This document shows positions 6,878-39,096 of a stretch of 40,085 nucleotides of DNA, piece by piece. Source of the stretch: Perkinsus chesapeaki ATCC PRA-425. Its lineage: Eukaryota > Protista > Perkinsozoa. The translations under genes were made by a program, and so were the position numbers. Numbering within the stretch: position 1 is the stretch's first letter; every line of letters begins with the position of its first letter. The notes under the pieces were generated by a model that was not told the origin of the DNA, did not search any database, and saw only the letters and a program-made list of their open reading frames with translations. The stretch lies in NCBI GenBank assembly GCA_013115145.1, contig JAAPAO010000319.1, positions 1 to 40,085 of the forward strand. Reading direction: 5' to 3'.

Positions 6878-9800
6878 ATGGCGGCGATCGGCGGCCTTAG
6901 TGTAGCGGCTTTCGCCTTTGCACGAAGTCGACGGCTATCTCGAGGTGAGGACATCTAGCGACAAGGAGAGGATAAGTTTGGTCCACGAGCTTCAAAAACA
7001 CAGCTAGGTGCTTGGTCTATATCGTCGATGATCTCATGCTGCACGCTTGGGCGCACGGAGCGCCCAATCGTGATTATATCGCCGCATTAGAGTTTTATAA
7101 TTGTTAGGCTATTATAAATAGATCCGCAAGTATATAAATATATATCCGTTCATCACCAAGCTCATAATAAGAACCCCACTCCTTTATAACTTATACACTG
7201 CATGCCGAATTCTTATCGATGACGGTTTTTCACGTCTTAAGATTCAAATATCAATCCTTATGTTCTCGGCACGTTGTCAGCACAGTTCCTATTAATGCGC
7301 ATACCTGATTTGATCGGCCTTTTCGCACGTATACAGGCCATGATTTTCTGACACCTCTAGCTTTTACTGTATAGTTATTTCGCAGGTAATCGATCGAAGA
7401 AAGAATCGGGTGGCTGGTGGGCCCTAGTTGGCAATACTCCTCTCATAAGAATAGACTCAATTTCGGAGTTACTCGGTGAGCAGCGGAGCGAAGCGTTTCA
7501 TGTTTCCACATTTTCTCATGTCAGGTTGTGAAGTTTACGCAAAGTGCGAGTTTGTGAATCCTGGCGGATCGGTAAAGGACCGAGTAGCCAAAATGATAGT
7601 ATCAGATGCCGAAGATAAGGGCCTGTTGAAGCCAGGGGGGACTATATATGAGGGCACCAGTGGCAGTACTGGCATTAGTCTCACGTAAGGGCCGCTGGAT
7701 AGACTATTTTCTGGACGCAGCCATTTTACGGACCCATTTGGTAGCGAAATGTATGAGGCTGATAGGCAACTATATGATGACGAACATTTTCTCGATACGA
7801 GTTTTTCAATGAGCAGCATAGAGCAACTTGAGGAGAAAATTGAATAGTCTGTTTTACTTGAATCGATCGACCGTATTGGAATGTGAACCTAACCGTTAAT
7901 CGACCTTCGGGTATGATGGAAAAATATACCTTGTTAGGAAATGGGAAGCTCGCAATTTGTCACTGGTGCATACGCTGGAGACCAAGGCAAAATTTCAGAG
8001 GAAATCTTACAAAATTCTGGCCTTTTTTCCGCATCTGCCAACACTTTTCGCAGCAATTTCGTGAGTAAATTTCAGGGCGGAATCGAGGAGGGGTGACAGA
8101 TATTCTAGTACGGTTTTCAGTGGTGCAGTTCTGAAGGCGAATTCTCTTGGTTTTAGGATGGCTGGCCTGGCCCGCGGGTACAAGACAGTTATCTTCATGC
8201 CAGACGATCAAGGTAAGGAGAAATCAGAGATGATAGAGACACTGGGAGGGGAGGTAAGCCAGGGAAGAAGTTCATACCGCTCTCCTGTTAAACTACCCAA
8301 GATCTCATCAAGTTGGTCTCGTGGACCACTGGGCTTCCCCGAGCTTAGCGCCTATATTCCATTCACGCTCTCTCCGTGTGCGCAGTTACACCCTTTGCCG
8401 ATATCTCAGGACTCGCTGATTGACTAAGAAAATGGTCGGTTCATTATCCTTCTTCATAGGTCCACCTATGTCGCCCTGTTTCCATAGTTGACCCTGAGCA
8501 TATGTGCAAGCTAGCAGAGCAAGCAGCCGAGAGGGACCCTGGCGGATTCTATGCTGGTGAGGCGAAATAACAGAGCGCGCGTGGCACGGCTCATTTAGAT
8601 CAATTCGAAAACGAGTCTAATTTCCGGGCGCATTTCCTCGGCACTGGCAAGGAGATCCTTGAGCAGACTAAGGGGAAAGTTGAGGGTAGGCCAATTCTTG
8701 CAATGAGGGAGATATTTTTTCTATTAGTGTTTGTGACCGCTGCTGGCACTGGCGGTACGTTGGCCGGTACGGCGGCCAGACTGAAGACAGAGCTTGGTGA
8801 AGACAACGTAACGGTGATCCTTGCCGATCCACCAGGTGAGGCTGCTGAGGCTAGAGACATGTGTAGCTCGTTTCGTGCAGGATCGGCCTTGGCTCGTCGC
8901 ATCAATACTGGTGTGTTATTTAATGAGAAGGATAAGGAAGGTTATCGAGTCAGACATCCATTCGATACTGTCACGGAAGGCATTGGTCTCGGACGACTCA
9001 CACATAACTTCACACTAGGTCAGATTAGTACTCGAGAACGCAAGGGCTGCATTAACGGACATTGTACGGTGGCAGCAGTCACTTCATGGCGTACTCATAC
9101 TGGGGCCTTTGAAAACTACGATTAAGGAATTTCGATTCGATTGCGGAACTGCTTTCACACGTAGAATGCGATCCTACAATCGCTTATGAAGCCCGGAGTT
9201 GATTTGATGAACATGACGGCTATCATATTGCAGCTTGTGTTCAGGCCTTCCCTTCATCGACTGTGCTGTGTCTATATCGGACGCAGAAGCTGTTCGAATG
9301 TCTCGATGGCTCTTGGCTAAAGATGGCCTTTTCGTGGGCAGCAGTGGCAGTCTTAATGTTGCTGCTGTTGTTAAAGCGTAAGCCATTTGCTTTAGTCAAT
9401 TGTTGTTGTCGATTTTAAACAAGGCTCTCTTAAGTGAGGAATTCCTGCACTGTAGTGGCCCGCTATCATCACGTATACAGTATCTAGTGTAGCCTAAGGG
9501 TAGTTGCTTTCGAAAGCAAGAGGGTGTGAGCGACTTGATACCCCAACGCCGAGAACAGCTAAGACAACTCGTTCCATGTTTTGAGAGGGGTTAATACCTG
9601 TCCTTTCAACCTTGATCCAAATGCCGGTGTGAAGGTATGCAGAATCAAATGTACTGGTAAACTGTTTTCCATAGTGTTTCCGCGAAATCGAATGAACATT
9701 GGCTTCTTTGAGAATCTTAGGTCGCCTGCTGTTAGATACAAAAAGGGTTACATCAAGCCAGGCCAGAGAGTTGTGACCATCATGTGCGACAGTGGAATGA

Positions 9801-9910
9801 GGCATCTATCCAAGTTCTGGAATAACTCCTATTTGGCATCCTTTGACGGTCTTGTCATTGCTGATGAGGAGAAGGGTCAGACTCCACTGGAGTTTGTTAA
9901 GTCCGACTAA
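6878..9910 (+). CDS. Cysteine synthase / O-acetylserine(thiol)lyase-like PLP enzyme (fungal MCY1-like subfamily), multi-exon
   Basis: Start in GCCACCATGG context. Spliced motifs: [74 protein letters not shown]; TAA at 9908-9910. Confidence 0.93.
7483..7494 (+). other. Intronic 12-mer GCGGAGCGAAGC, copy 1 (intron 7476-7524)
   Basis: Exact match to the three other copies. Confidence 0.8.
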
Positions 9911-10134
9911 ACGGTTTCTCTTACCAACTTTTCATTGAGTTTCTTCTCTCTCCTCAGGAAGCTTTTCACAATCTACTAGTTCTGTAGTTGCCTCATCCGT
10001 CATAGGCTAAGGGGAAACTAACTCGATGTCTTTAGCTTTCTTGGATCGAAGATTTACCCGCGTACTTGGCGCGCGCGGGCTCCCCGTTAGTTCATTTCAT
10101 TGAGCTTCCAGCATTTTTCGTCATTCCCTAACTA

Positions 10135-11730
10135 ATGTCAGCGCTTTCTCTTATAAGGCTGGTAGATACTCTAAACGCCAATCGCTTTATACTTGCCTCG
10201 AAGTCACCAAGAAGGCTGGGGCTGCTCAAGACCGTTACGGGCAACCGCCTCAATATCGAGGTGCTCGGGTCGACCTTCCCGGAGGACTTGGACAAAAGGT
10301 AAGCAAGGCTAAGCTGAGCTACTGATGATTTTCCCCTCAGCGCTCTGAAACCCGCCCAGTACGTGCTCGAGACTGCTACTGAGAAAAGCAAGGAGGTAAG
10401 AAAATCTGGAGGAGTCTCTCGCTAAACGATTTTCAACTTGAAAAAACTGAAATTTTTCATACTTCATGAAATTTTTCATGCAGTTATTGAATTTCCGCTA
10501 GTTTTCCCTTGTCATTTTTCTGTGTTCCATAATTGCTGTGTATGGGCTGCTTCCTTCCCGTCGAAATCCTTCCATGATTTCGCATGCAGGTAATCGGTCG
10601 CCTAGAGCCTCCAATGGACGGCCACTTCACTATGGTGCTTTCGGCTGACACTGTTGTGGTAAGCTAATTTGCCTGTATTAAACACCTTCGTTTCTTGCAG
10701 GTCGCGAATGGAAAGATTCTAGAGAAGCCAGAGGATCATGCTCACGCCATGGAGATGCTAAAGGCATTACGCGCACAAACGCACGAAGTTATCACCGGTA
10801 GGTTAGCCGTGCTTGTCAGCTCCAGATACGGTTGAATTTTCGCATCGTGAATACGCTACAATATGACCGGTGGATTACAGGTCCTGTGTGAGCGTCAATC
10901 ATATAAGGACCGTTCATATGGGAAGCACTGCGTTCTATATAAAAACTAGCACTTCCTATCATAGGAAGTCTGTTTTCAAAGCAGATGGCTTCCTGGATCA
11001 AACGGTTCAGAAATTTTGGCACCATGAGCTAACGCATTGTTTCATGCGCTCGTACTGCAGGAGGTCCGCAGACTAATATTCGTTGGTATGCCTGGAGAAA
11101 TCTTTGGTGTTGTTTTAGGTGTTTGCGTGAGTTGTAGGTGGTCTGATGGTCGAAGAGATCACCGTCGGTTCACTACCAGCACCAAAGGTGAGGGCATCTC
11201 GTTGAGTGATATGCTACCTCTGTAACATCCTCGAAACTTTCTCCACGAACAAGGCACTCCATGAGCGGAGGGCGCCATTATATGCAAAATCGAATGCCCG
11301 GAATTTTCCTGTTTGCCTGTTAAGCTGTATAAATATTGGCAACCTAGCTACGGTAGGAGAGTTCCTAATATAGTGGTGGTACGGGGAATGTGCTGAGGCG
11401 AAATTGACCCTACCTTTCGCGAACTGCCGCCAAGTCACGTGCACTTCGAAGCTCGCATATTGTTTTTGTTCAGTAACGTTCTCGGCCAACATTACTGATG
11501 AAGACCTTCAGGCGTACGTAGATACCGAAGAGCCGATGGGGAAGGCTGGCAGCTACGGCATCCAGGTGGGGAGGGCCGTCGATTAGCCATCGACAGCCCT
11601 GCTATTTGATTAGGGTATCGGAGGTCTATTGGCGTGCAAGGTTGAAGGGTGCTACTCCAACGTAGTTGGTCTGCCTGTACATGACACTGCCCAGGCCATT
11701 GCCGAGTTACTGTCTACAAGTTCCCAGTGA
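10135..11730 (+). CDS. maf: Maf-family nucleoside-triphosphate pyrophosphatase (YhdE/ASMTL-like), multi-exon
   Basis: ILASKSPRR, SADTVV, ILEKPED, THEVITG, EPMGKAGSYGIQG, GCYSNVVGLP; TGA at 11728-11730. Confidence 0.93.
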
Positions 11731-12086
11731 TCTTCTTGAAGTTTCTAGTGTAACTTCGTTGTCTTGCGCTACCTGATGAAATCTCAGTATTTCATCATTG
11801 ATAGTGTTTAGCGTGACTGATGAAATTCCATAGTTGTGCTATAGAGTTGGTTGCTCACCAGAATAAGCATGAATTAGCATTGGTATTGAATATCAATCGA
11901 AGCTCAGCTGTGCTCATTTCCTTAGCAGCTGGGACCCGAAGTCGCCGGCGGCCCATCTGCCATCCGACGCTCACCAATTTCGTGGCAGTGCCTCGGAAGG
12001 TGTTATCTTCATGTGACTTCCCACGGCTCGCATCTTTATATCATCCACCATCGTTTACATATGGGCTCTTGTCAGTTGACTTTTTA

Positions 12087-13108
12087 ATGCTGAAAAGAAC
12101 ACCTCGGAGCTCGGCCCCATCTCGGGGTTCAGGATCCTCTTCCAGCAAACGTGGTCGTGAGGAAGTTGATCCTGATTTAGTCGCTAAATTTGGGGAGGAG
12201 TTCGGCCCCCGAGACGGCCCGTATAGTATTGCATGCACGAACGAAATCGGGTGAGCTCATTCCACCACGGCGAGGTTAGTGTGCTGTCTCTGCTTCAGAT
12301 CGGCTTGGAAGGCAAATAGTCGAGGTCAGATTGTTCTGGGGAAGAAGGGCAGCCAATGGCACCTTTACATTCGTATGTCCATTAGCGCTGTCCTTTTGTC
12401 TACCATTTTTGCTTTTAACACGGTTTGCCTTTGATACTTGAGCGGCTCATCACTACGATAGCGGTTGGCTTCTCGACCTTCAAACCGTAATAGTACTTAG
12501 TCCAGATTGGGATACTAGGCTCAAGTGGTGCTGGGCGTTCACCAGCACATTCCAGATGCCTCAACGTATGTTACTCTATTAGTCGTGCTTCTTGAGATAC
12601 TCGCATAGGTCGGGAGGTCTACTGAAAATAAATAATATCGAGTCCTCTACGAATTGAACTACCTCTAAGATACTGCCTTTCAGATGAACTGGACACTTCA
12701 GCAGCGGTCGCCAGTCCCTCTCGATCACCCGGTGACACTATGTGCGTTGTAATGCTGGAGCTGGCTGATCGTCCCGGTAGTCTCTGCTCACCGCACTGGC
12801 AGGATCCCCCTCCCTCAGGTTCATTTGTCACCTGTGATCCCTCAGAGGGCACCGTATCATTGACGGATGACGAAAGGCTGTTAGCTTCTGCTTCCTCGAA
12901 GTTCTGGCTGAGAGAGCGAGTGTGGTCGGATGAATGCCAAGATACCTGTACGATCGTCCACCGTTGCGGATCGCCCAAGTCACTTCAGACGTCATCAGCC
13001 CCGTCGGGTATCCAAAAGTCTTTCTTCGACATAGCAACTGGAAGATACGCTGTGATGCTGCTGGCGTCGGCGCAGAATTTGAAGGCGACGCCACATTCCG
13101 ATGTGTAG
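12087..13108 (+). CDS. Hypothetical multi-exon protein; may extend to TAA 13551-13553 (KKLAKLASRRNSYKKKLVELKKK*)
   Basis: Phase-compatible GT-AG introns (12251-12298, from 12373) join MLKRTPRS... to an open exon of about 140 codons ending at 13108; no family recognised. Confidence 0.45.
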
Positions 13109-14045
13109 CTGGAAAACACTACGCCCATCTATCAGCGCTTTTGCTCTTGTGTAGGTCCTGGTAGCTGCGATAGAGGAGCCTAGTGAGATTGAGTAGGATC
13201 ACTCTTCATCGCTCTCTCGTCCCGAGTTGCTCGTTCTGTTATAATGAATGCGAAAGTGAATCATTTGTTTTGTACAGAAGAATACCGAGTTACTGTAGTT
13301 ATTGTCCAAACTAGTTGAGCGCTACAGTGAATCCCATCTAAAACCTTCGCCTCGATTCCCTACCAAATCTGTCAACGCTGCTGTCTGTGCAACTTGAGAG
13401 AAACCCCCGGCCACTTTTGTCCCAAGCCCAGTTTCTGGCGACACAATTTTTTGTCTCTTCCTCTCTATCAGCCTTCTCACGAAAAAGCTGGCCAAGCTGG
13501 CATCCCGTCGTAATTCCTATAAGAAGAAGCTTGTTGAATTGAAGAAGAAGTAAGGCCACAGTCTGCGCGTTAACAGTATAACAGTTGTTATACAGTCCTC
13601 CAAACTAACTTAGAATATCACGTTTTTGTGACCAATCTCTGCCAGATTTGCGACTCTGTGCCCCAAACTCAGTGAGTCTCGTTCTTATATGGCCTTCAAT
13701 ATACCACCCAAGTTTCAGCATCTTACTGGTTATTGAGAACTGAGAGATGTATGTGCCCGTTTATATTCCAACGCCAAAAGTGACTCAGGCGTATCCATTC
13801 TATGCAACTGCCGAAAATGTTTAATGCTGTAATTGTCACTGTATAGTTCATCGGGGCTGGAATGTAACTAGTGTCGAGAGACTCTACAGTCGTTGTCCTA
13901 GTTGAACCGGTTGTTGCGATAAGTAACGTATCATAAGCTCCATTGTGTTACTAGCAGAGGCAGGTATTGGTATTGAAGTCTCGCTCGGAATTTGGACATA
14001 GTAGGGATAGTCTAGCTAGGTCATTTTCGGCGTAGGACTATAAAC

Positions 14046-14408
14046 TCACACACACGCAGAAGTTGAAAAGTCAATGTGAAATGAAAAGGTTTGAGTTCGT
14101 ACCAAGCTGTCGTTCTCAGATTTGAGGAGGCCAAGGAGCTTGTACAGTCGCTCAAAAAGGATATACAATCCACCGAAAAGTACAGCCACATGCCCGTGAA
14201 AGATGATTGCCATTTGTAGGGAGCTTGAGGAGGCGAAGAAGCGAAAGCTCGACGAGAGTACTTCCACTACGGCCTCTACCGTACTGTGACGGCCGAGCCC
14301 ACTTGCTGTTTCTAACCAAGTCGCACAGCGGCTTTGCAGAATTCGCGATTGTTGTTGTATTAGTTGTGATGCTCGCCATTTGTTCTTGCCATCTGTGTTG
14401 TCTGACAC
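14046..14408 (-). CDS. Possible hypothetical protein exon(s) with one hydrophobic segment
   Basis: 120-codon ATG ORF divergent from the PPX gene; no motif recognised. Confidence 0.25.
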   Translation of the reverse strand: MSDNTDGKNKWRASQLIQQQSRILQSRCATWLETASGLGRHSTVEAVVEVLSSSFRFFASSSSLQMAIIFHGHVAVLFGGLYILFERLYKLLGLLKSENDSLVRTQTFSFHIDFSTSACV

Positions 14409-14546
14409 GGTGAGCGTGTTTGCTTTCGGATGAGCTATCTGCTCATGTCATTGAATGCCCACAGTCTCTTGCCTTTTATGTCTGGGTTGGGTTGCTCGCC
14501 CGATGAGAGAAATGCGTTACCGTCTAGTATCTTGTTATTGAATTAG

Positions 14547-16124
14547 ATGTCATCATCAACCTTTTTGCAGTGGGTATCTCAGCACACAGCAACGGCACTG
14601 AGAAGCCGCGTTAACAAGGCTACTGGTCCGATAGTAGGCGTAGTTGGAAATCAAGCTGCAGACGCCGACAGCATAATATCCGCTGCGGTGAGTATCACTA
14701 TTGCATTCTCTACCTTAGATGTATTTCAGGCTTTGGCGTACATCCGAGATATTGGTGGCAATCGCCGCTACCAGCCCTTCGTACAGTGCGACGAAGAGGA
14801 TCTCTCTCTCAGGCCTGAGGTACGAACTGCACATCCGCGGCGCACTGGACGGTTGTCTCAGGTTGGCCTGCTGTGGACACGTTTCACGAAGTCACCTAAA
14901 GTCGCGCTGCCTTCCACCAAAGCCGGCATACCGTCTGCAGTTGATAGTTGGGTTATTGTCGACCATAACGAGCTCACTTTGAAAGGCTCCAGTGCTCCTG
15001 TTATAAGCATAGTTGACCATCATGTCGATTCTGGAAAGTACTCCTACACTGCACATGACTATCGGTTTACTCGAGCTCGTCTTTAGGTATCCGGAACTCC
15101 GGGGCGAGGCCCGGGTCATAGAGCCAGTCGGCAGCTGTTGCACGCTTGTGGCACGGGAATATCTCGACAGCTCCAAGCCCGAGATGGTTGATGTCCCTTT
15201 ATGCGGCATTCTTCTTGGTGTCATTCTACTGGACACTGTTAACATGAGCACTGAGGCCGCTAAGGTCAGTTACCAGCTCCGAGTCGCGGTTAAGGCACCC
15301 GTGGCTTCAGGCAACAGCGGTTGACTGGGATGTTGTCGAGCGACTCTCCGCAGTGGTCGGCTTCGACGAGCACCAGAGGACGAGCCTCTTTAGAGAGCTT
15401 CAGCAGGCCAAGACCGATCCCAAAATGTGGGAAAGGATGTCACCCCGACAACTTGTAGACTATGATTATAAGTAGGCCACTCTTCGGTTAGTTATTATGC
15501 GAGCGGCACTCAGTGGTTCATCCAGTACAAGCCTTCTTCGAGCGCTATGTTCTAAGCTGGTTTGTTCGGCACGCAGCCCTTGATACAGTTTCGTATCGTT
15601 CCCTTGCCGTTTAAAGTTTATTTTATATAGCTCTTGCCCACCTTGATTGCTGTAGATATTTTGACTCTGGCATCGGCGTAGGCATGAGCAGCTTATTGGT
15701 GCCTCTACGAGATGTAGCACGTGAATGTGTTGATAACATTCGTAGCCGAGGAAGTGATGCTCCAAGGCTCTGGGTAATGCGAAAAATAGTAAGCGGAGCG
15801 AAGCAAGATCGTACGGCAGGTTTTGATGTCCTGCTTCACAAACCCAGCGGGCCACATTTGCAGAGAGCTTCTCGTATGTGTGAAGGAGCCCGAAAAGGAT
15901 GCCGCACTGTTGTCTTCCATTGTGAGCTTCCTCGAGGGAAAGGAGATTCTTCAGCTGAAGAGAATGGATACAGTAAGACACATATTCGCCGCCTCTTCGG
16001 AGAGCCGTCTTCTTGTCAGGAGATTCCCGGAGCGGTGGCGTACCACCAGGGAAATGTTAAAGCCAGCCGAAAGAAGGTGGCTCCAGTTCTCTGCGAGTTC
16101 CTCAATTCCCAATGCAGATGTTGA
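14547..16124 (+). CDS. PPX1: Exopolyphosphatase PPX1/Prune (DHH-DHHA2 family), multi-exon
   Basis: GNQAADADS, VDHN, IVDHH, VGSCCTLV, ILLDTVNM, DYDYK, MSSL, RELLV, QGNVKASRKKVAP; TGA at 16122-16124. Confidence 0.93.
15793..15804 (+). other. Intronic 12-mer GCGGAGCGAAGC, copy 2 (intron 15774-15819)
   Basis: Exact match; the intron joins ...APRLW to VLMSCF... Confidence 0.8.
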
Positions 16125-16461
16125 ACGAACACACCCATCCATTGTGTTTAGAGTGATTTCTTACATTATCGGTGTTTGTTATTTGTCAATCTGGGTCACA
16201 TGCGGCCGCAAGTTAGACTGAACACTACGCTCGTCACTATCATAGTGACACTATGATACCCTTGTATCTGTTGAACCCTTGTGACACTATGTTGGGCTTC
16301 CAATCATCTAATGAAAATGCGCTTGTGTGACTTTACTTTTGTGAATGCCATAGTTCATCCATAAAAAGGTCTTCTCTCCCCGATATGGTTTAATACGATC
16401 TTGCATAAGATTCACGTTTACGTTATATTGATAGGGCTCCTTCAGTTGTCGTGTTATCACC

Positions 16462-19400
16462 ATGTTCTCATGGCTAGGTGTACACGACCCGAGGGAGCCT
16501 GTAAATGAAAATGAATCTCGAGTCACTGAAGATCACGCTCTCTCTGACATTGCTCGCTCTGAGCTTTCCGTGGAAGCATCACCTCACCACACTCCCGCCT
16601 GGGTCTCATGGCTCAGGGATCAGACCGGAGCTTCTCCCTCCGCTGAGGAGTTAGAACAAGATGAAGGCTCTTCTTGGGGCATGTCAAGTGACAGCGATTC
16701 TGCCGCGGAAGTTGTTACGGGACAGCCGACGCGATCAAGCATTGTGCCACCATTGAGGTTGGACAAGTTGCCCACGTATGAAGAGGAATCGCCGATGCCA
16801 TCCGAGTCCAACGAAGGGGCTTTGGAGGGAATAGCGGACAAAGTCGTTGGGTGGTTCAGCAAACCTGATGGCAAGAAAGCCTCTGGCGACTCATGGAGCA
16901 TATCGAGCGAAAGCGATCGCGGCATGCAAGAAAACGATAGGGAGCTTCCGATGAGTGATGAACCAGTCAATGATCCTCAACCAGCGGAGAGGAGTGGAGG
17001 TGTCGTGAAGTGGTTCGAAAAGCTAGTCGAGACAGTGACCGATGATCATGATGAGACAAAAGATGGTGAACCTCTTACCGCGCCCGCAGTTCGACCCTCC
17101 GAGGATGACTCGCTGGATGAAGACCCGGACAGCGCCGACAGTGATAAGTCAGCCCCTGCGATAGAGACGTCCGTACCGGAATGGTGGAGCTCGGCAACTG
17201 CCGTCACTAGCAATACAGGAAGCAAATCTTGGGAGAGCCTGTCGGTGATGGTAGGGGATTTCAAGCCACCCTCATTAGATAGTGTTAGCTGGTCTGAGTC
17301 TTCTGATGGAGATATCGAGGATACCCTCAACGAGCCCATCATCCTCGACGCACAAAATGCAGGTGTGACTACCTTGGACGGGCGTACATATGATTATGTT
17401 GGAGACGAGTCGGATGATGTTTTGGTGGTAGCCGACCTGGAGCAGATGAATCGCGTACCAGAATCGGAGGCGAAACAAGAGCCCACGGTAAGGGACCTTG
17501 CGAGATCCTTCGAGGGAACCGCACCAACTGCATCCGAGCTCAACGAAGTCAAACTAAAACCAGCAAAGCCGCAAAAGAAGAGGTCTGCGACAGGGAAAAG
17601 GGGGAGTGAACTGACGGATAGCAAAGAGCAGCGAACAGCCCCTCCAAGGAAGGAAGGGAGGAGCTCTTCTCTACTTGAAGCAATGCAGAATAGAGATAAG
17701 CCTGGGCTTGAAGCAATGCAGAATAGAGATAAGCCTGGGCTTGAAGCAATGCAGAATAAGAATAGTGATCTATCGATTACAGTGGATGGCCAAGTAAAGC
17801 AGGTCACAGAGAGGATTAGTATGAAAAAAGAAACCGCTACGGTTACAGACGGTGCGAGTAGAATAGATGCCACTAGAGAACTCAGTTGGCAGAAAATAAC
17901 TCTACCCAAAGTTAACAATGACGGCGTAGCTGTTGGCATAGATGATATTGTCAGAAAAGAGGAGCCATCGGAAGAGAGGCTTGAGGAAGGTGTCGCATTC
18001 ACCGAGCCGATACTAGTCGACTGTGATCTGATATCAGAAGAAGTACAACGAAGGAAGGGCGAGGATTCGACCATGGTCACCCGGCAACCCGACGATGAAG
18101 TTGATGTTGGCGATCGTCCTCTACTTGATGGAAATGCAAACTTCGAAGTATCATCATCCAAAGAGTTACCATATGAACAAGATGAGGGTGTAGCTACTGA
18201 TAGGGGTAGCATCGGTAGTGAAGAAGAAGTTATTGAGCTGGATGACTATGACGATTGGCGGCACGATCGGCATGCTGGCGAAACGGCAACTGAACTGTCA
18301 CATGTGGAGGGGCTAGGAAAGGATATTTATTCTCTGAACATCGAATCCCAGCAAGAACCAGAAAGCTTTAGTGCAAAGCTAGACTATACTAAAGAGAGCG
18401 ATCATAGCAAGACCAAGCACCGAAACCTTATAAGAGATCTAGAACAGCCGAACGGCCAAGAATGTCGGCTCGTCGAAAGCAATGCCTTAGTGACTAATGA
18501 ACTCTGTGATGGTAACAAATTATCACCGGACCATATGGCCGCGGAAGAAGAGAGCTTCCGTATCGTATATCGCCAAAGCACCGCATCTTTGCAAAGCTTC
18601 GGTAGCGACACGGATAACAGGAGGAATATTGGCATTGCCGATTATAGCCCTAGTCGGCGAAGCGAGTCTTCAATGGGGTCTCATCCAGGAAGCACAGAGA
18701 GTTTAACAAGTCCCGCAACTGTTGTACTAGAGACAGTCTACTCACGTTGCGCTGGCGACACCTCCGAGGTGACCCTGGCCGACTTCTGCCCAGACATCAG
18801 TGCCACTGAGTTCGATGCAGATGAATACGTGAGGAAGATTGAGCACGGACATAGCCCTTGTCCTGCTGAACGGCGCCTCCTTAGACAAGCCTTCCTCAGT
18901 GGCTATGATGATGCACTCCTCGCAGTTGAGAGAGACGAGATCTGTAGCGGCTTTGAAAGGGTTCATGAGGAGCCTTCTGCTGTATTCATCGAACTGAGTG
19001 AGAGAAGGCGACAACGGGAGTCCCGCCGGACGACTATTGGTAGTTTGCAAACAGCGCCCATACAGACGTCTAAACAAAATCGAAGAGCGATAACAGCGAC
19101 CGTTCCTAAACATCGGGAGGAGACTCTTGACACTCCTCAGCGGCATGCATATATAACTGAGGCCATCACACCTACGGCACCCACGGAATACATCGAGCTT
19201 GAGGACTCCCCTCTGAGTGTTACCGAGGTACGGGAGGAGTGCTCAATGAGGATGCCATCCCGGTTCGATGAAGCTAAGATAGAAATAGATGAAGTGCTCA
19301 TGGAGCGTCAAATCGATGGCAAGAGTAGAAAGGAGGCCTCTGGTAAGTATTCGTCTGAGTGTTCTTTTCATTCAGATTTGCACATTGGGTCGGGCGGGTC

Positions 19401-27235: not shown

Positions 27236-27415
27236 GCTTTTGGTCCAGGAGGGGAAACGACTGGGTATTCGACTGGTTCATCAGGCACCAGCGCATGTAC
27301 GTACGCGTGTCTCATAAAAGTGGATAACTTTTGGGTGCCTTGCCAAGTCTGGGCAGTGGCGCGGCGCATACGCGTGAGCGTGTTCTGCCAAGAGTACCTG
27401 CCGATCAGTATTCCT

Positions 27416-28965: not shown

Positions 28966-30117
28966 CTATGGGAGCACTAAACTCCTAGACCGTTGTCCCG
29001 CGCTGGGTCTATCATCGATAAGTTTTGGGTTTGCCAGAGCGATGCCGATCTGGCGTGCATCCCATTGATAGTGTAAGTTGTAGTGACGAAGCAGGGTGAG
29101 CCCGACTGCAGTGGGGCCGCGAGATTCCTTGATCATAAGGGTGCAGCTGCGGCCCCCTCGCGTTTCGAGGACGTACAGCTCGCTTGGTACTGTTACATTG
29201 ACATCAGTATCGGATTTGCCTCGCAATACAAGCTTGATCGAAGGGAGGTAAACGCGGTCACTACAGCTTTGTAGTTTATGAGACGACGCAGGGCTAAAAT
29301 TCAGTACCAAGTCTCGACCAGCAGCCTTGAGCCTTGCTTGAATGGCCTTGAGTATTGGGGCAATCACCTTAAGGCTGCCGAATAGCGAGTTTGCCCCACT
29401 GTCTATCAATATAGGACGAGACGTGGATGACATCTCTCCCCCCACTTCAACGCCTTTCAGATCAATGGTCCAGGTCTTCGCCCCTACTGTTAGCGGAACT
29501 TGTAGGAATGGCTCTTGATACTCTGTGGTATCCTTTCCACCAATAATAAGCTCACCTTCATCCATGTTTTCTGGCTGAAAGTAAATTGAAAACTCTCTCC
29601 TAGTGATAACACCCTTATCTAGAAGCTGATCTAATAAAGGAGCGTGATCTCCGTCCTCAGGTCGAGGCGCAAGTCCCAGTGTTGCATGAGGGGGTAGCCC
29701 GAAGGTAGAGTAGTGTCTAACTATACCGAAGTCGACCTCTGGAATCTCGTCTCCTCCAAGCGTGAAGGTACCTTTGTGGTAAACCATATCCACGCGAGAC
29801 TTATCTTGGAATACGACCGACGTCCAATAACCTTCGTGAGGTTCAAGCTTGCCATGATAAGAGCCATAAATCAGTTTACCACAGGGTTCGCCATCGCAGA
29901 TTGATTGGTCCGAAAGGACAAAAGTATCACCTGCCCCAGTGTCTATCATAAGATTTAGGTCCTGACCGTCCGCTTGAATCAGTACAGTAATTTCATCGGT
30001 GACCACCTTCCACTTCACAATCCTCCTCGACATTGGTAGGCGCAAAAGTGTACCACCAGAGCTTTCTATACATAGCAACCACAAAGGAAAGAGTCGTTCC
30101 AGTAGTGGTGGTGACAT
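28966..30117 (-). CDS. Intronless pepsin-like (A1) aspartic protease, copy 1
   Basis: 383 aa; hydrophobic N-terminus, LMIDTGAG, LGLAP, FSIY, GELIIGG, LIDSGA, VGLTLLRHYNLHY. Confidence 0.93.
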   Translation of the reverse strand: MSPPLLERLFPLWLLCIESSGGTLLRLPMSRRIVKWKVVTDEITVLIQADGQDLNLMIDTGAGDTFVLSDQSICDGEPCGKLIYGSYHGKLEPHEGYWTSVVFQDKSRVDMVYHKGTFTLGGDEIPEVDFGIVRHYSTFGLPPHATLGLAPRPEDGDHAPLLDQLLDKGVITRREFSIYFQPENMDEGELIIGGKDTTEYQEPFLQVPLTVGAKTWTIDLKGVEVGGEMSSTSRPILIDSGANSLFGSLKVIAPILKAIQARLKAAGRDLVLNFSPASSHKLQSCSDRVYLPSIKLVLRGKSDTDVNVTVPSELYVLETRGGRSCTLMIKESRGPTAVGLTLLRHYNLHYQWDARQIGIALANPKLIDDRPSAGQRSRSLVLP

Positions 30118-30844
30118 TATATTACTTCAGGCTGTGTTATGCCAAAATGTACGGTACTAAACAATCGCAAGTTGTAGCCAAAGTTAGCCGAAGTTCCAAT
30201 CTCGTGCCGACGAGACGAGACGAGAAAAGGGCTCTGGTGTATTCAGAGGCGCCCGAGACACGCACCGAGAGTGGCTACATGCCGCGTGCTGGCCTCTGGA
30301 GAGGCTCGAACAGGTAAGATAACCTTGAGATATGCTTGGTATAAACGCATGTGGAAAACAATTTGTTTCATGGCACAAAATTGGCTAACAACATTCGACA
30401 TTAAACATTTCTCCCTGAAACTGTTGTGGTATATGATACTGGCTGAACAGAGCCCCTAAGGGATAAAAGACTCGGATTTTGTTGAGTGACGAAGGTCTAT
30501 CTCACTTGTCGAAGCGCTGTGCACGCAATCGAGAGATTGCTGAGGTGCGAAGTTAAGAAACGTGTACAAACGAAGAGCAGGCACGCTCAAAACTTAAGGT
30601 GTACAGAGGACATTGAGCTTGCTATCCATCTTTTCAAGTCTTCCCGAGTAATTACTCGTTTGCCGAAGATCGACGAGCTTCGCGGAGTCGTTGCGCCAAA
30701 AACCGCTGAGTATTGATTCTCACTGAACTCATCGCTTCTCAGTTTGAATTGTCCTAATACCCCAGGAACTGGTCTTTCCAATGTCGCATACGTATTCAGA
30801 ATACGATATTGTTCATTCAGGCTCCATTCTCCTATTTCATGATC

Positions 30845-32041
30845 CTATGCGTCCGGAAAGGTCCGGACCTTCGATGGCTGTGATTTTCTTACTCTTCTCC
30901 TCAACCGCCTAAAAGTGGGTTTTGCTTTTGTCAAAGCGATACCGATCTGACGTTTCTCGGCTTGGTAATGCAAATAATATTGACGAAGCAGACCAAGCCC
31001 GACTACGAACATTCCGGGCAACTCTACGATTAGAATGGAGCATCTCCCACCCCCTGGCCATTCTAAGACGTACAGATCTTTCAGTATCGTCACGTTGACA
31101 GCATCGTCTGATTCCCCTCTCAAGGCAAGGTTGATGGCTGGGAGATAGTCTCGATCACTGCAGCTTTGTAATTCATGATACCCAGAAGGTCTCGATAACA
31201 TATACCGACCAGCAGCATTGAGGCTCGCATTGATGGCTTCGAGTATCGGGCCGGTTACTTCCCGTGGGGCGTAGAGGGAGGTGGCACCGCTATCTATCTC
31301 AGCTGAGTAGGAAGTATAGGGCAAGTTAATATGCTGGCCCGCCACTTCGACCCTCCTCAGATCAACGCTCCATGCATTCGTCCCAACCGTTAGTGGGACG
31401 TGTGCCAATGGTTCTTGGTACCTGGTGGTATCTTCTCCACCAATAATCAGTTCACCCTCATCCATATTTTTGGGTTCAAAGTAAATCGAAAACTTTTTTC
31501 CAGTGATAATGCCTTTATCTACAAGTTGGTCTAATATGGGAACGAAATCGCTATCGTTATCTTCGTCGATATCTTCTGATCTTAGTCTGAGTCCCAGTGA
31601 CGCATGAGGCGGTAGCCCGTTGGTAGAATAGTCTTTTACTATACCGAAGTCAACGTCCGAAACTCTAACTCCACCTAGCTCCAGCTCACCCTTGTGGTGG
31701 ACAATAGACGTGCTGCTATCATCTCCGAAGACAACCTCCGTGGATTCGCGATCGCAAACGGCAAGCTCGCATTGATAGCAGCCAAAAACCGATCCACCAC
31801 AGGGCTTTCCATCGCATCTCGACTGGTTCGATAGGAGAAAAGTCGTGTCTGTCCCAGTGTCCATCATGAGGTTCAATGTCTGGTTGTCGGCTCGAATCGG
31901 CACAATCATTGAGACAGTGAAGATGTTCTCCCATGTAATAAACGTTTGCGAGATTGGCAGCCTCAAGAGTGTGCCATCGATACTCCCTAGGCATAGCAAC
32001 CATAAAGCAGAAAGTTGTTTCTGTCCAGCTGATGGCTTCAT
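30845..32041 (-). CDS. Intronless pepsin-like (A1) aspartic protease, copy 2 (start taken at MKPSAG)
   Basis: MMDTGTD, FSIY, GELIIGG, EIDSGAT, VVGLGLLRQYYLHY; colinear paralog of copy 1. Confidence 0.93.
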   Translation of the reverse strand: MKPSAGQKQLSALWLLCLGSIDGTLLRLPISQTFITWENIFTVSMIVPIRADNQTLNLMMDTGTDTTFLLSNQSRCDGKPCGGSVFGCYQCELAVCDRESTEVVFGDDSSTSIVHHKGELELGGVRVSDVDFGIVKDYSTNGLPPHASLGLRLRSEDIDEDNDSDFVPILDQLVDKGIITGKKFSIYFEPKNMDEGELIIGGEDTTRYQEPLAHVPLTVGTNAWSVDLRRVEVAGQHINLPYTSYSAEIDSGATSLYAPREVTGPILEAINASLNAAGRYMLSRPSGYHELQSCSDRDYLPAINLALRGESDDAVNVTILKDLYVLEWPGGGRCSILIVELPGMFVVGLGLLRQYYLHYQAEKRQIGIALTKAKPTFRRLRRRVRKSQPSKVRTFPDA

Positions 32042-32656
32042 ACTTGAGCTTCGTGTTGCGCGTGAGTACAAAACACAAATGAACGGCTTTACCTTCCCCC
32101 GATGAGACGAGACATAACACGGCCAGTGACCGTCGGCCACTTGTGCCCTAGGAAAAGACCTTTTCCAGAAGTTTCGCCACCATCCTATTGGGCATGATCA
32201 AAGAAGGACGAGGGCTTGAGCTATGTTCAGGATGGATATTGAACCGAGTCTTTTTTTCGGAGAGTTTCAGGGAAATATCGCAAATCGTGTCTCGTCTCGT
32301 CGGTGACGTGATGGGGACGACCTTTCGCCTCCTTCTCTGCTGGGCTAGTCCCTATACGAACTCCGGATAGCGCGGCCGGGATCTTCGTCATTGAGAAGGT
32401 ATCATATTTATTCGAAAACCAGCGGTTCTTTCCAGTACGTCGCGCCTGGGTGAGTCTTGATACACGCTAGGAGCATGTGAATTAAAAGATCTTCCATTCA
32501 CGTTACCTCTGCGACTTTTCGCGCCATCCAGTCCTTCCGGAGCACAGATAGCACACTTCTTACTCTTACGTACAGATAGCCTATACGGAGCAGCCCGTCT
32601 AAAGACGGGCTCAAGTGAAAGGAAATGTCATCTACAACTTCCCTTTTTTGTAGCTC

Positions 32657-33866
32657 ATGCTCTCATATTCCTATGTCCACTTGTTCCTGGCATTTTCGCC
32701 TATACAAAGCATCTATTATCGGAACTACCACAAAGCTGACGTGTTTTACGATACCACAATGCGCTTTCTGTTCACCTCGTTATGTGAGCAGGCAGTAGGG
32801 ATTCCCTGTCGTGTTGCGGTTGACCGAATCGGTGGGCGAGAGGTGAGCTGGGACACGCACGTCTGTCTACTTTCGGGCCTAAAAGGCTGAGTCAGCTACA
32901 ACATGCCTGCTATGAACATATATCCTGTCTTGCAGCGCGTCGTTGGTTGCCTTTGGATGAAGATCCCTCACGAGTTGGATGGGCCAGAGGAAGAGTTGGT
33001 CAGGGCGCATGTGTACGTAGCATCGCACTGCGGGTTGTTACACTCAACGACTCGTGAAGAGTCCAAGCGCTGACGTCCGATCCGCCCCATCTCGACAGTC
33101 GCGCTATACAACTGAGATCCTCTATCAGGTCAGTTCCGAAAAGGCATGGTGTATTTGGCTCTATACAATATGTAAGCTGTGGGCACCGATATTGTCAAGA
33201 TTAGCAATCTTCGAGGCGTGATTAAGACTTGCCGTTGGCTTCGTATGAACGAATGGCTTCAGGAGTATCGCTCGGTGCAGGACATAATACACTCCCATCT
33301 TCACTAACTGACACGTCGAATTATTATATCGCGCCCCGATCTCGATCGGAGTTAGTACTTCCAAGTTCGTACCTGCTCTTAGGTCGAGGTTGCAGGGCCT
33401 TTCAAGGAAAAAGGGATTGGAGCTGAGCTCGTAAAGTATGCTATCGACTATGTAAGAGTGTTAGCACGCTCAGCGCATATCAACAAGGTGTTTCGCTCGC
33501 TTCAAAACCAAGGTGCGATTTGCCGCTTTTCGAGGATTTAGAAACAACTAATATGGCGGGTTAATCAACGAGTACCCTGGTTATCATATCTAAGATGAAA
33601 GTTCTTTACAGTGCTATTCAACCAGTGTTCGTTTTAGGGCAAGGAGATGTCAGATGTTCTCGCGATCACTTTGCGCACGAACCCAACAGGGTTTATGGCT
33701 CAGAAGTACAAGAAAATGGGATTTATCCAGCTTACTGGTGAGCTTTGCTTGCTCTGGCTTGAACCAGCGACTTGAACCACGAGAGGGAACTCTGGACCAC
33801 TTTGCTTTTTTAGAGGATCGAAGAAACCCACTCGCTCTCTTCGCTTTGTACTATGATCGAAGTTGA
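32657..33866 (+). CDS. GNAT-family N-acetyltransferase, multi-exon (start approximate)
   Basis: RVVGCLW, acetyl-CoA motif FQGKGIGAELVKY, AQKYKKMGF, ends LYYDRS* at 33866. Confidence 0.75.
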
Positions 33867-34234
33867 ATGAACACATGTACTTCATCACACCTTGCTTGTT
33901 CGCTGAGTGTGCAGGTCAATGTGGATCCTTTCAGCCCATTGCTTCCCCATTGCTGTCATTGACCACTTTCAGACTTGAGTTCAAAAGGACCACAACATAT
34001 TCGAAGTGTCTTTGGCCGAAGTCTTGCTAGATTCCTTCACAGTCTCTTTCTCGTGTATAAGGAAATGCTACGACCTTAATCGCACTTTACGAGTTTACTA
34101 ACGCAATGCATGCCATTCGTTATTGTGCAACTTCATTTCAAAAAAACTCAAATCGTGGCGGCGCCGTGCAATGATAAAAATACAAACTTATCAAATATGA
34201 TCATTCACCATCCTGTCGGACATGCAGTTCACAA

Positions 34235-34889
34235 TTACCCTAGTGTGTTTTCGCTGCTGTACGTGACATACCTAGCCACACAGACTTCGGAAGGAACGCA
34301 GACGAGTGCGACGATTACAGGAAACCGTCTTCGTCTTTGAACTTTTCGTAAAGTTCGTTCATCGTGTCGCCTAAACAACAATGTTAAGCCGTTGATGAGA
34401 ACACTCGTATGCCACCTGTTTTAGGGACCACGTTCTTCCCGACGAAAATGTATATTGTCTCATTCGAAGAGTGCTTCACAGTCGATCCTAAACGAGATGA
34501 ATCCTAGCGGGTGCGCAATGGTCCGCCTTGCCTTCGCCGCTCTCGTCAGGCTGCGCGTCCGCGTCGGGCCTGAAAATGCTTTTATGCACAATGTATTTGA
34601 ATTCGCCGCAAAGCATGTTGCCCGGCACTAAGAACTTTTGCTTCTCGATATCAGGCAACTCGGTTCTCTCATGTCTGAATGCATTCAATGATGATGCTCT
34701 GCGACAACACTTCTCAGCAGCCCACTTCTCAGCGATCACAGGGATCCTCTCGGGGTACTTCTGCAGGATTTTCTTAGACTCACTCCTGCGCTTCTCTGAG
34801 ACAGCTAACTGCAGTAAGCATCAAGGTTTCGGTTGCCCACCTAAAGAGTGTTTGTTGCGGTACGAACTAGCTCGTGGCGATGACGACAT
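34235..34889 (-). CDS. ATG8: Atg8 ubiquitin-like autophagy protein, apicomplexan type, five introns
   Basis: [57 protein letters not shown]. Confidence 0.95.
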
Positions 34890-34929
34890 GCCAAAACTAT
34901 CACAACTGTTTTTCTAGTTCGTTATGTGA

Positions 34930-36260
34930 TTGAACAACTCAACAGGTAGGAGTGGTTTATGCGCAAAATTCCTCCTCCCAATCCTCTATGCCTATCCGGG
35001 AGCTGAAGCCGCTACGTGTTGCGTCATCGTCACCAGTCTGTGGCTCTACCACTCCTCCGAAGATAGCAACCCACAACAGAGACCACACGGCCTCGATAAG
35101 TTGGTGAATGCTGTATAAAAGAATCATACGAATATGGTAGTGGGAGCAGCAGCAGTTCGCAGCAATGAGATAAGGGCCCAAGGAAAATCAACATAGAACG
35201 GATGATGACAATCATCACGATGATGAGATCAACAACTTGAGATTACTAAGTAACCACCATGGAGCTCTCACCACGTTAAGAGGTTTCCAGTCGAGGAAAA
35301 GAGTTGGCGTAGTTGGCATCAGCAATGACCCCAACCGCCTTATGAGCCGCTGAGCTTCACGCTCGTAACGACTCGGGCGATGTGGAGGCGGAGCCAGCCA
35401 AAGGATACACCAAAGCTTAGGTAAGACCGGATATGTTATTCTGGGCAAGAATACTTGGGGCGAACCTCTTGGATCTTGCCATGATACAGTATAAGGGAAA
35501 ATACAAGGATAGACGAAATGATGATGACGAAGATTTTCATGATGATGCTAACAACATATTTACTAAGGCAGCAGTAGTAGCAATAGTAGCAGCGGAGGAG
35601 GACTAGTGGACACCGACGATAGCAATTAGTGGTTAAATGAGCACCTTCGGAAGCAGCACCTCACAATCGCTCTGACGAATAGATGAGGGTGGTCCGCTGG
35701 TGCTCAGGGGAATAACGTAGATTTTGGGGTAGTAGATTACGTCCGCACACATGCACACCTTTTCTTGATATTAGCAATAATAATAAATGATAACATCGCC
35801 TCCGTATGGCATAATGGAGGATAATTATAGGCTGTTATTAGGGCCAATTATCGACTACTGGAGGTCATCAGCATTTCAAAGGTAGGCAGCAACCACCGAC
35901 AGGGCGGTGGTGGTGGCGGTAATAACAGCAGCAACAACAGCAATGATTATTACTACGCAGCGATAACTAACTCTTCTTCTTCAACTACTACTAGTAAGAT
36001 GTGACAACTTTGGTGATGAGAAGGCAGCAACAATACATTCGATAAGACGGGCATCGACAACGAGTAGTAGCAGTGGGGGAGGATGGGCAACAAATAGATA
36101 TCAATACAGGTGATGATGCGACAGCTGAGTTCGATACGAACCACGAGCCGCCGCATCGTTCAATAGACATCATCATCATGATAATAATAATAGCCATTTC
36201 GGACTGTACTAATCAGATAATAAGAAGCTCGCCCTCGAGAGCACCTCGTCATTGTCGATA
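34930..36260. other. Low-complexity, trinucleotide-rich (GAT/CAG/AAT/GGT) region with broken hydrophobic frames
   Basis: Many short triplet runs; no continuous or spliceable gene could be built. Confidence 0.4.
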
Positions 36261-36278
36261 ACACCGTATACATTAAAC

Positions 36279-39096
36279 TTAGAAGTACTGACAACCGGTG
36301 TGCTTCATCACTTGTCGAGCACAGTATCTGAAGGAATTCAGTTTAGGGGGCTCTTTCCGGCAATGCTTCTGCTGTTGCTGCAATCCTACATTCCTTCTTC
36401 GACACCGTCCATAATCATCTGTCTGGTGATTGAATGCCAAGCGATAGATCGGGAGCCTGACATCAAGCCAAATTGGAAAATATCAGGCGATTCGTTCACG
36501 AGCGTGGAAGGCATTAACCTCACGGGCGAGATTCTTAAACGTGTAAACAACCCTTGTAGCCTATTATCACGTTGTTTATATACAACGAACCCAAGAGTAT
36601 AAAGATAATTTCCCCAGCTTCGTGCGATAACCATCGGAAATAAAAGTCTCACCGTCATCAGGCAGAACCTCGCTGGAATCGTCGTCACTGAGGCTCGAGA
36701 GCGAACTCTCGACTGGGGATGGAACACTACGTGGGGTGAGATCGCGGGCAAGCAACCTGAACCGCCGCCGCCATCACTTCCGCATCACCAATCCTCCGAA
36801 CTCTTACCTGGCGTATATAGCGGCGATGAAGCCTCCTACAAAGCCATCACCGGCGCCGATGTCGTCGGAGATGGCAAGAGGGTCCAAATCTCTCACAGTG
36901 TGTGCGAATGCGTCGCATGTATCCGTTAAGTTGCTGCAGCAAATGACCGGGTCGGGACCTGCCGAGCAATGTCTATACGGCAAACCGTATCTGTTGACCT
37001 TGGGTCATGATAGCCCATGCGCCTGGCTTCATGAATGCTGACACGGCCTCTGCGATCTCGCGCGGGCTCATTTTAGATAGACCCGCGATACCTGCGTGAG
37101 AGTGCAGTTCCGCCGAGGTGAATCGAAGGCCTCACCGAGATGCTCGGCAAACGCGGTAAACTCCACCTCGTTCCCGAATATAACGTCACAAGCGTTTTTG
37201 GCCATATACGTCTGAAAGAGAAAAGTTAGGCGGAGCGAAGCAACTCGTTGACTTACGAAATCGTCGTTCTGGCAGGCCCAAGCAGCGCTGAGACCCGCGA
37301 AGAGCTTTGTGTAGCCAGATTTAATCTGTGGATGATTGGGGATGTATCTGAGAGGGCCGGATGGAGACGCGATCTGACGGAAATACGGTATTATTTACTC
37401 TCTGCACGCGTATCCATCCCCGCAAGCGTAAAACGCAGTCGTATAGAGTATTCTGCAGTCAGTAGGAATGCCTGTCAACAACACTGCTCCTCATTTCCAT
37501 CAACTCTGACCACCTACCTCTATCGGGACCAGCTCGGAACTCCGGCGCTACTCCCAAATCCGTAATCATCGTTCCTGAAAACAGTGCCATCCAAAAACAA
37601 CAGCGGAGCGAAGCTCTTTATTACGCTTCTTTTCCTTAAGAAGAGCGCAACATTTGCCAGTACGTCCACCGGGGAACACCTGAGCGCAGTATCCTCCCCG
37701 CCACGAGCACAGTACTGCCGCCGGTGAATCCTACCTCGAAGTCCGTCTCGAGCCCGGCCTCGACGCAGGCCTCGCGCAGTACATTAGCATATTCATCATC
37801 GCCGACACTGCCGACGATCCGAACCGACGTGTTGGCGAAGCTGACGTCCTGCAAAATAAGTAGCGCTCGCCCGGATGATCGATTATTATGCCACGAAACT
37901 TACGTTGTACTCTGGATCGGTCTCGTGGCGGTCAAACCACCACTTGACGCCTCTCAAGGAGTTCATCGCCTGCCCGCCCGCAATGCGCTGAAAGGATGAC
38001 GCTGGTGGGGACGGCGGCGGTGACAGCTGGGAGGCTTACATGAACTGTTAGCTCCCCGTCCCCCAACATTCGCGCAAACAACTTCTTATCTTCGTCGCTT
38101 CCTGAGATAAAATAAAGTGATAAACTATTGTGTTAGGAGTTATAATATAGACTATGAAGGTGAGTATTAATAGTGAAAACAAAGAGGCCTTGCAAAGGGA
38201 AAGATTTAATATGTTTATCAAGCTGATAAATAACAATACCAATTCCCTATTATATTTACCCAGTGGATAAGCTACCAGGGTTATACTATTTTATATTCCT
38301 AATATGAGTACAGAAGAGAGGAAGGAGTGTGATGAAATTGGCAGTAAGCAGTAGTAGGATAATAGTAATACCATCCGTGAGCCTCTGTGTGTTGACTTTC
38401 AAGCCAAAGCCACTAGCGTCATCAACAGTCGCAACCAAGTCGAGAATAGGGTGGTCGTATGATACAACGCTGAATGTTTCAGCTCCACCCAAGGAACAGG
38501 GACACGTCGTCGAGGAGGACATGACTGGAGTAATAGTCCTTGATAATGATGACGCCTCATCATCATCAGCGGCAGCAGCAGCAGCGACGGAGTAGTCGGC
38601 GGCAGCAGCCATACTAGAGGGGCTATTGGGAAAGAAGGGCTGACACGAATTCAAATGAAAGATGCGACAACCGAAAGATTTTCGAAAAGCTCGCCGAGGA
38701 TCATAGGAATCGACCACGTGTCAGCCCGACTAGCCCCTACCGACCACCGAACCACAACCGTCACTGCGCCAGGAAATTACTCCATGTTCCTTGGGCGTTG
38801 GTAATTACGAAAACAGACTCGCCGAGCTGACACGAAAGCCGTTCCAGAATCCCACCCGTCGTCAGTCGCTGCGTCGCTGGCTCAAGTCCGTAAGTGTTGA
38901 AGTCATCGATCGTTGCCACCAAATCAAGAAGAGGGTGGCACATGCCAACAATGCTGGCGTACTCGTTGGACAGAGCCTCCAAGCGATGCTGAGCAACCGA
39001 GACTCGCTCGTCGTCACAGGTGCTCAGCGTGGATGATGCAATGTCATCATCATCCTTTACTACGACGGGACTTGACGTGGAGGCGATTATCGCCAT
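36279..39096 (-). CDS. Adenosine-kinase-like PfkB/ribokinase-family protein with two alternative first exons (38856-39096 and 38372-38612)
   Basis: HP[LI]LDLVAT, IAGGQAMNSLR, GSVGDDEYA, TGKCCALL, VIFGNEVE, MTQGPDP, DDIGAGDGFVGGF, MKHTGCQYF* (TAA at 36279-36281). Confidence 0.9.
37230..37241 (+). other. Intronic 12-mer GCGGAGCGAAGC, copy 3 (antisense in intron 37212-37256)
   Basis: Exact match. Confidence 0.8.
37603..37614 (+). other. Intronic 12-mer GCGGAGCGAAGC, copy 4 (antisense in intron 37575-37624)
   Basis: Exact match; shares CAGCGGAGCGAAGC (14 nt) with copy 1. Confidence 0.8.

Follow-up and report, generated by a model that had tools for sequence, protein, structure and literature searches.

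A twelve-base word shared by very short introns of unrelated genes, in both orientations, in the shellfish parasite Perkinsus chesapeaki

Short DNA words can be spread through genomes by the elements that carry them, as is the case for B-box/extra-TFIIIC sites and for the CTCF sites borne by short interspersed elements (SINEs). In bacteria, repetitive extragenic palindromic (REP) elements occur as hundreds of units of 20-40 nt, in both orientations, within non-coding space, and are targeted by specialised insertion elements. Some mobile elements are themselves selective about their targets: Ty3 and the Dictyostelium TRE elements dock at RNA polymerase III genes, and the Dada transposons of Perkinsus marinus are site-specific in tRNA genes (PMC3706591). 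Introners, which are transposon-derived intron families, have been described from Micromonas, Aureococcus, dinoflagellates and Amoebophrya (PMC7789003). Here we describe a 12-base word, GCGGAGCGAAGC (hereafter the 12-mer), that recurs in very short introns (micro-introns) in a stretch of 40,085 nucleotides of the P. chesapeaki genome (strain ATCC PRA-425, contig JAAPAO010000319.1; the window), and we follow it through the genome assembly of this shellfish parasite, one of three Perkinsus species sequenced.

The window contains exactly the four copies that an earlier note on this DNA had listed, at 7483, 15793, 37230 and 37603, all reading on the forward strand. Chance would account for 0.01 copies in a window of this length, and none of 100 shuffles reached four, so the note's view that four chance copies are very unlikely is borne out. 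There are no one-mismatch copies in the window beyond the four exact ones, and the two matches found with two mismatches are at chance level. All four copies fall within GT-AG introns, the intron of copy 2 being a probable one. The features are as follows.

7483..7494, forward strand: core 12-mer, copy 1, exact match; sense to the cysteine-synthase gene (PALP domain on the forward strand)
7482..7514, forward strand: 33-nt long-form unit, consisting of R, the 12-mer, G-W-TTCATGTTT, five free bases and TTTT
7476..7524, forward strand: intron of copy 1, 49 nt, GT-AG, nearly all of it the long-form unit; based on frame and motif continuity
15793..15804, forward strand: core 12-mer, copy 2, exact match, short form; probably sense to a DHH/PPX1-like gene
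15774..15819, forward strand: probable intron of copy 2, 46 nt, GT-AG; its excision fuses forward frames of 53 and 133 codons
37230..37241, forward strand: core 12-mer, copy 3, exact match; antisense to a PfkB (adenosine-kinase-like) gene on the reverse strand
37212..37256, reverse strand: intron of copy 3, 45 nt, GT-AG (GTAAGT...TTTCAG), in frame and free of stops, in the PfkB gene
37603..37614, forward strand: core 12-mer, copy 4, exact match; antisense to the PfkB gene
37575..37679, reverse strand: intron of copy 4, 105 nt, with the acceptor at 37575 and the 5' end most likely at 37679

These introns were judged by the proteins they interrupt, with each exon searched against profiles by itself, and by an intron-likeness score that combines donor and acceptor letters, pyrimidine tail, length (40-58) and GC contrast. 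The intron of copy 1 scores 9 of 10. The cysteine-synthase exon upstream of it terminates in a GNTPLIRI...G motif, and the PALP profile resumes at position 22 straight after it, giving the join ...SELLG/CEVYAKCEF.... The intron of copy 3, with a score of 7, divides ...NDDF/TYMAKNACDVIFGNE..., and lies, as does that of copy 4, between two profile segments of a reverse-strand PfkB gene (profile 51-83 at 37639-37899 and profile 228-269 at 36807-37004), which is why we read both copies as antisense. For copy 4, open frames (73 and 38 codons) are brought together by the 105-nt version alone, with the PfkB-like join ...VLVAGRILRSG/TMITDLGVAPEF...; a 50-nt version (37575-37624) does not restore the frame. 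Sequence searches of the PDB with the PfkB exon pieces gave nothing useful, and no second allele or paralogue of the PfkB region was found in the assembly. Copy 2 is less secure. A DHH domain lies upstream on the forward strand (14547-15086); a competing 45-nt GT-AG segment on the reverse strand has an equal intron-likeness score, and the tail of the gene around the copy has no Pfam or protein-atlas match on either strand. With a rival segment and no domain match to fix the strand, the sense orientation of copy 2 is only probable. Of what the earlier note had proposed, introns of 45-50 nt thus hold for copies 1 to 3 (49, 46 and 45 nt) and not for copy 4, where 105 nt fits; sense orientation in cysteine synthase and antisense orientation, twice, in the PfkB gene also hold, with PPX1 as the probable case.

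Is the word a peculiarity of this contig? In the 41.7-Mb assembly there are 880 exact copies, set against 3 in a reversed-sequence control and about 5 expected from length, and they are divided evenly between the strands (448 forward, 432 reverse). With up to one mismatch allowed, the count rises to 1622 against 152 for the control; this leaves some 590 true one-letter variants, equivalent to about 5% divergence per core site. The genome-wide count that the earlier note had suggested thus shows the word to be real and far beyond chance. That it is a product of chance recurrence or of misassembly we consider close to negligible: 18 copies sit in a repeat found at contig ends, and nothing else points that way, whereas the excess over the control is large and copies lie within unique genes supported by domain matches. 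The 12-mer is absent from 230 kb of other organisms' DNA, its long form (below) had no match in a metagenome scan, and the metagenome loci of RPB2 relatives included neither a Perkinsus-like contig nor a copy of the 12-mer. A literature search found it in no relevant paper, nor any paper on Perkinsus intron motifs.

The 12-mer is found in proven introns of unrelated genes, in both orientations. We took as proof of an intron that Pfam profile coordinates run on consecutively from one side of the candidate to the other. By this standard the word lies in introns of RPB2 domain 6 (profile 183-228/230-274; sense, short form), SYF1 (59-98/99-155; antisense, long form), a protein kinase (162-208/225-258; antisense, long form) and an AAA_2 protein (46-89/109-134; sense, long form), with one-sided domain support in another kinase, an ankyrin protein, a DUF726 protein and an AAA_5 protein. 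Together with the window, this places the word antisense in SYF1, two kinases and PfkB, and sense in RPB2, AAA_2 and cysteine synthase.

How many of the remaining copies are intronic is harder to establish. An intron-likeness score of at least 7 is reached by 10 of 12 reference introns (five proven by split domains, three with one-sided support and the four in the window), by 37% of copies and by 9% of random positions nearby (p about 1e-13). From this it seems that micro-introns house about 40% of copies, which are thus enriched there four- to five-fold. The short forms found in other contexts are close to background in composition; their hosts may be longer introns, exons or spacers. The earlier note's statement that the word occurs only inside introns thus applies to the window and is not shown as a general rule for the genome. 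Three versions of a classifier based on continuity of open reading frames (ORFs), and a periodic Markov model, failed, as random positions passed as often as motif sites. ORFs of at least 100 codons span 46% of random positions, the same as for motif sites, so that ORF length is no evidence of coding in P. chesapeaki; one proven intron is itself spanned by an antisense ORF of 164 codons. Twenty long flanking ORFs gave no Pfam match. Long antisense open frames are very common in the genes of this species, an example in the window being 15466-15981 on the reverse strand.

We examined what surrounds the word in 100 distinct copies collected with their flanks. A purine precedes it (position -1) in 98 and G or A follows it in 86. 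Beyond this the split of copies into a long and a short form is bimodal. In 44, the word runs on into G, W, TTCATGTTT, five free bases and TTTT, which makes up a unit of 33 nt, and position +31 is T in all 44. In 45, nothing is common beyond 14 bases; in these short forms the flanks are random outward from -2 and +14, and information is about zero outside -1 to +13. The second half of the long form, searched for strictly, occurs 66 times in the genome and once in the control. In contigs with known 12-mer positions, nine of the eleven strict second halves follow an exact 12-mer; they are therefore not a generic 3' signal of introns, and the 33-nt long form is a true unit. It has sub-variants (TTT versus AAT in the second half), and its consensus, from R and the 12-mer through G-W-TTCATGTTT and N5 to TTTT, has no terminal inverted repeats. 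The unit at 7482..7514 scores 18 of 20 against the consensus, as derived from the 100 copies, and its second half is among the strict matches (C2394:7497-7514). Copy 1 accordingly belongs to a 33-nt family, contrary to the earlier claim that the rest of each intron differs. Around the word, AT richness is confined to an island of about 50 nt. Copies cluster modestly: 11 times the next copy is no more than 2 kb away, where 4.1 such cases were expected, neither the same nor the opposite strand being preferred.

Three further observations concern sequences related to the word or its second half. At L028:1440-1560 and L034:340-460 the 12-mer precedes an inverted, imperfect version of itself (GCTTCACGAGTTCCGC) in a repeated context, which may be a separate small repeat family. 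In the window, the tRNA-Gly(CCC) gene at 2581-2651 has a trailer (2656-2673) matching the long-form second half (TTCACGTTT, five free bases and TTTT) with no 12-mer; no other tRNA gene of the genome has a trailer like it. Also in the window, positions 16410-16440 hold a solitary TTCACGTTTAC with a T-rich stretch and AG after it; some 50 nt downstream of the word is the ATG of a 1011-codon ORF (at 16462), and this looks like a 5' leader or acceptor region.

The position of the unit within introns raises the question of whether it acts in RNA. It might be a signal for very short introns, serving in the sense orientation as a purine-rich enhancer after the donor joined to a branch-site and pyrimidine module, and in the antisense orientation as a pyrimidine-rich stretch. 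In 35 micro-intron contexts, the long form is sense in 12 and antisense in 6, and the short form sense in 2 and antisense in 12 (Fisher p = 0.0045). The sense layout is donor, 2-12 bases, word, second half, 0-15 bases and acceptor, and the donor is 4-14 nt upstream of sense long forms and the acceptor 22-37 nt downstream, as might be expected of such a signal. In about ten cases a long-form copy, with AG after it, is found 20-70 nt upstream of a start codon, which would be in keeping with an intron in the 5' leader or, as an RNA signal would lead one to expect, with a trans-splice acceptor region. Yet the 12-mer is equally common antisense in proven introns and has no fixed polarity. Whole units occur antisense (L003, L083, L037), where the second half is useless as a branch site or pyrimidine tract, and the entire unit can then fill the intron with the word adjoining the acceptor (L003, L083, L063, L041). 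No match was found for pairing of the 12-mer with the U2, U6 or spliced-leader (SL) RNA of P. chesapeaki, and no structure is predicted. The fixed-distance junctions described below are, moreover, DNA-level events. We therefore regard an RNA signal as quite unlikely, and the proven introns in both orientations support the earlier argument that independence of orientation speaks against a strand-specific RNA splicing signal and for an element that works at the level of DNA.

One DNA-level candidate had been named already. GCGNAGC, where N is any base, is a DNA mini-hairpin motif (Kimoto and Hirao, PMC13037366) that is known from priming sites of phages and plasmids (PMC13037366). Two overlapping units of it, at positions 1-7 and 6-12, make up the 12-mer, and a mini-hairpin in single-stranded DNA might then be the feature selected, in replication priming or in transcription. 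We judge this earlier suggestion very improbable. Such a hairpin tolerates any loop base, yet position 9, the free loop base, is A in 880 copies against 77 with any other base (G 46, T 25, C 6). The conserved purines at -1 and +13 are outside any hairpin, and the strands are used alike, without bias relative to transcription. Folding of ten host segments gave z-scores from +0.1 to +1.4, under standard parameters that do not model the GCGNAGC mini-hairpin (PMC13037366). With the loop base fixed, purines flanking the word and both strands in equal use, recognition appears to be sequence-specific beyond what a hairpin would need.

What, then, could keep the word so constant? At about 5% divergence, neutral neighbours of the core should be about 95% alike, yet in half of the copies they are random, which argues that the core either is under selection or is a stand-alone unit. 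Equal strand use and a sharp core with unconstrained flanks are also traits of a protein-binding word. On this basis, we lean tentatively towards an old family of miniature insertions whose 12-bp core is now a DNA word read by a protein without regard to orientation, largely in micro-introns. A miniature insertion element would have spread long ago, landing in or creating short introns and 5' leaders in either direction; its core would since have been kept by selection, with a putative sequence-specific protein reading it on double-stranded DNA in any direction. The T-rich second half would survive mainly in the sense orientation, where it could double as branch site and pyrimidine part, and would otherwise decay or be lost. 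The selection, the binding protein and the ancient mobile origin are each inferred.

Several findings sit uneasily with this account of a selected, protein-read core. Neither inverted terminal repeats nor, by eye, target duplications were seen around the 33-nt unit. About 60% of copies are unplaced, ORF-based placement failing in this genome. If short copies arose alone, a neutral family of fairly young age could also have the observed ratio of exact copies to one-off variants. Finally, the one relative that appears to be young, described next, is known from contig ends only, its interior being present in no contig.

This relative is a repeat of 73 nt that is 100% identical at a minimum of 13 contig ends (18 with variants) and always adjoins the contig terminus.

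L001:1-73 (G000:C1:1-73), also L091-L102: 73-nt repeat carrying the 12-mer 10 nt from its tip

At the tip, the word is followed by ten bases and then by unique DNA. Of eleven independent junctions, five are followed on the same strand, at exactly 11 nt, by the start of a genomic copy of the word (mostly of the long form, with no more than one mismatch), a spacing with a chance of about 2e-5 per junction. A sixth 11-nt junction is deduced from coordinates. At six of the eleven junctions there is no 12-mer copy nearby, and in L101 the terminal 33 nt of the repeat are in tandem. A mis-join at the shared word would not have produced a pair of copies spaced by 33 nt; we accordingly take the joining at a fixed distance to be real, and something must therefore recognise the 12-mer on DNA. 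Candidates for the nature of the repeat are a site-specific mobile element, a recombination site or system, and a chromosome-end structure.

The repeat bears on the possibility that the copies are nothing more than relics left by an introner-like mobile family, without host function, the 12-mer being the best-kept or latest-copied part, such as a transposase-binding site. In cysteine synthase, SYF1, a kinase, an AAA protein, an ankyrin protein and others, entire micro-introns are occupied by the 33-nt unit, which runs in both directions and has the splice sites at its ends or just beyond them; a young repeat with the word near its tip joins beside other copies; and both the clustering of copies and the TTT/AAT sub-variants, which resemble transposon subfamilies, are as expected of a mobile family. 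The earlier proposal that the word is the core of an intron-generating mobile element gains some support here, from the unit filling micro-introns both ways and from the 73-nt repeat; the companion proposal of a footprint does not, as short copies retain nothing of the tip of the repeat. Nevertheless, relics without function should not combine a core at about 5% divergence with copies of which half share nothing past 13-14 nt, nor should the long and short forms be bimodal. No two copies share a whole intron, and terminal inverted repeats and consistent target duplications are not seen; some introns have GTAG at both ends, with no consistent repeat, by eye only, over the 35 micro-intron contexts. 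We hold functionless relics to be rather unlikely.

A broader proposal, which we put forward as unlikely, is that the micro-introns of Perkinsus house a whole vocabulary of DNA words (the 12-mer, B boxes and others) on which chromatin or architectural proteins dock. At least one living mobile element would then land by way of the factor bound to the 12-mer, and introns would be maintained partly as housings, in a genome that in this reading has little intergenic space and trans-spliced messenger RNAs. The 100 motif loci (79 kb) contain 28 words resembling B boxes (GGTTCGANYC), where about 5 would be expected, and no intact tRNA genes lie near these words.

Several sources of the word were considered and rejected. 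The SL RNA genes of P. chesapeaki do not contain the 12-mer, which removes the SL RNA intron as a source, and neither the U2 nor the U6 small nuclear RNA (snRNA) contains it or its complement. The 37 tRNA genes have neither such a 3' end nor a common trailer, so tRNA tails or trailers are not its origin. B boxes, frequent as they are, lie at no fixed distance from the 12-mer, and no Rfam family matches near the copies.

The same genes yielded some observations in their own right. The single U2 snRNA gene (L109:1500-1720, reverse strand; G000:C2990) reads GUAUGUA in its branch-site-binding stretch against GUAGUA elsewhere in eukaryotes, and the one extra U may bear on the choice of branch sites in micro-introns. 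At L104:602-700 and 858-926, some 160 nt separate an SL RNA gene (exon ...CCGTAGCCATCTTGGCTCAAG, then GTAAATATCC...) from a tRNA-Gly(GCC) gene located on the other strand. The word (AA)TTTCGTGGCGCG(TGA) occurs, in excess, about 15 times in 265 kb (for example L069, L104:540-600 and L107), and a related word, GTGGCGCGC, is found about 55 nt upstream of both SL RNA genes; TTTCGTGGCGCG/GTGGCGCGC may be a promoter element. Elsewhere in the window there are two aspartyl-protease (PF00026) paralogues that are 54% identical, one at 28966-30117 on the reverse strand and the other its neighbour, with a third on contig C442.

If the 12-mer is a selected DNA signal housed in micro-introns, there would be a reason beyond splicing for the thousands of introns of about 45 nt in a compact parasite genome, and a defined bait of 12 bp with which to seek the binding protein, in a lineage about whose gene regulation next to nothing is known. 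If it is instead the core of an intron-filling mobile family, it would rank as the shortest introner-like unit described, and the 73-nt repeat a candidate living relative with fixed-distance integration. Either reading bears on how introns originate and persist.

It remains to compare the family with the systems named at the outset. As with the site-specific elements Dada, Ty3 and TRE, the 73-nt repeat joins unique DNA at an exact distance, 11 nt upstream of the word, in five of eleven junctions; unlike theirs, its target is not a known RNA gene, and the repeat is known here without its interior. Bacterial REP elements offer a parallel in that hundreds of short units occupy, in both directions, the scarce non-coding space of a compact genome, but here the genome is that of a eukaryote, the units are in spliced introns and there is no palindromic stem. 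The resemblance to introners is closer. In both cases many unrelated genes have introns formed by one short element, which may face either way, and the 33-nt unit has its splice sites at the ends or just beyond them. In contrast to introners, similarity extends over 12-14 nt (short form) or about 33 nt (long form) and not over the whole intron, inverted or direct terminal repeats are not seen, with splice sites that are canonical GT-AG, and conservation is much stronger in the 12-mer core than elsewhere, pointing to an old family held by selection rather than to a recent burst. Factor sites carried by mobile elements, for their part, are likewise short, sharp and independent of orientation, present in hundreds of copies with free flanks and carried by a mobile element, and B-box words are also in excess in the P. 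chesapeaki genome; the 12-mer differs in lying within micro-introns of protein-coding genes rather than in intergenic DNA, and in that its binding protein is putative. Taken together, these comparisons place the 12-mer as a variant of introners and of element-borne binding sites.

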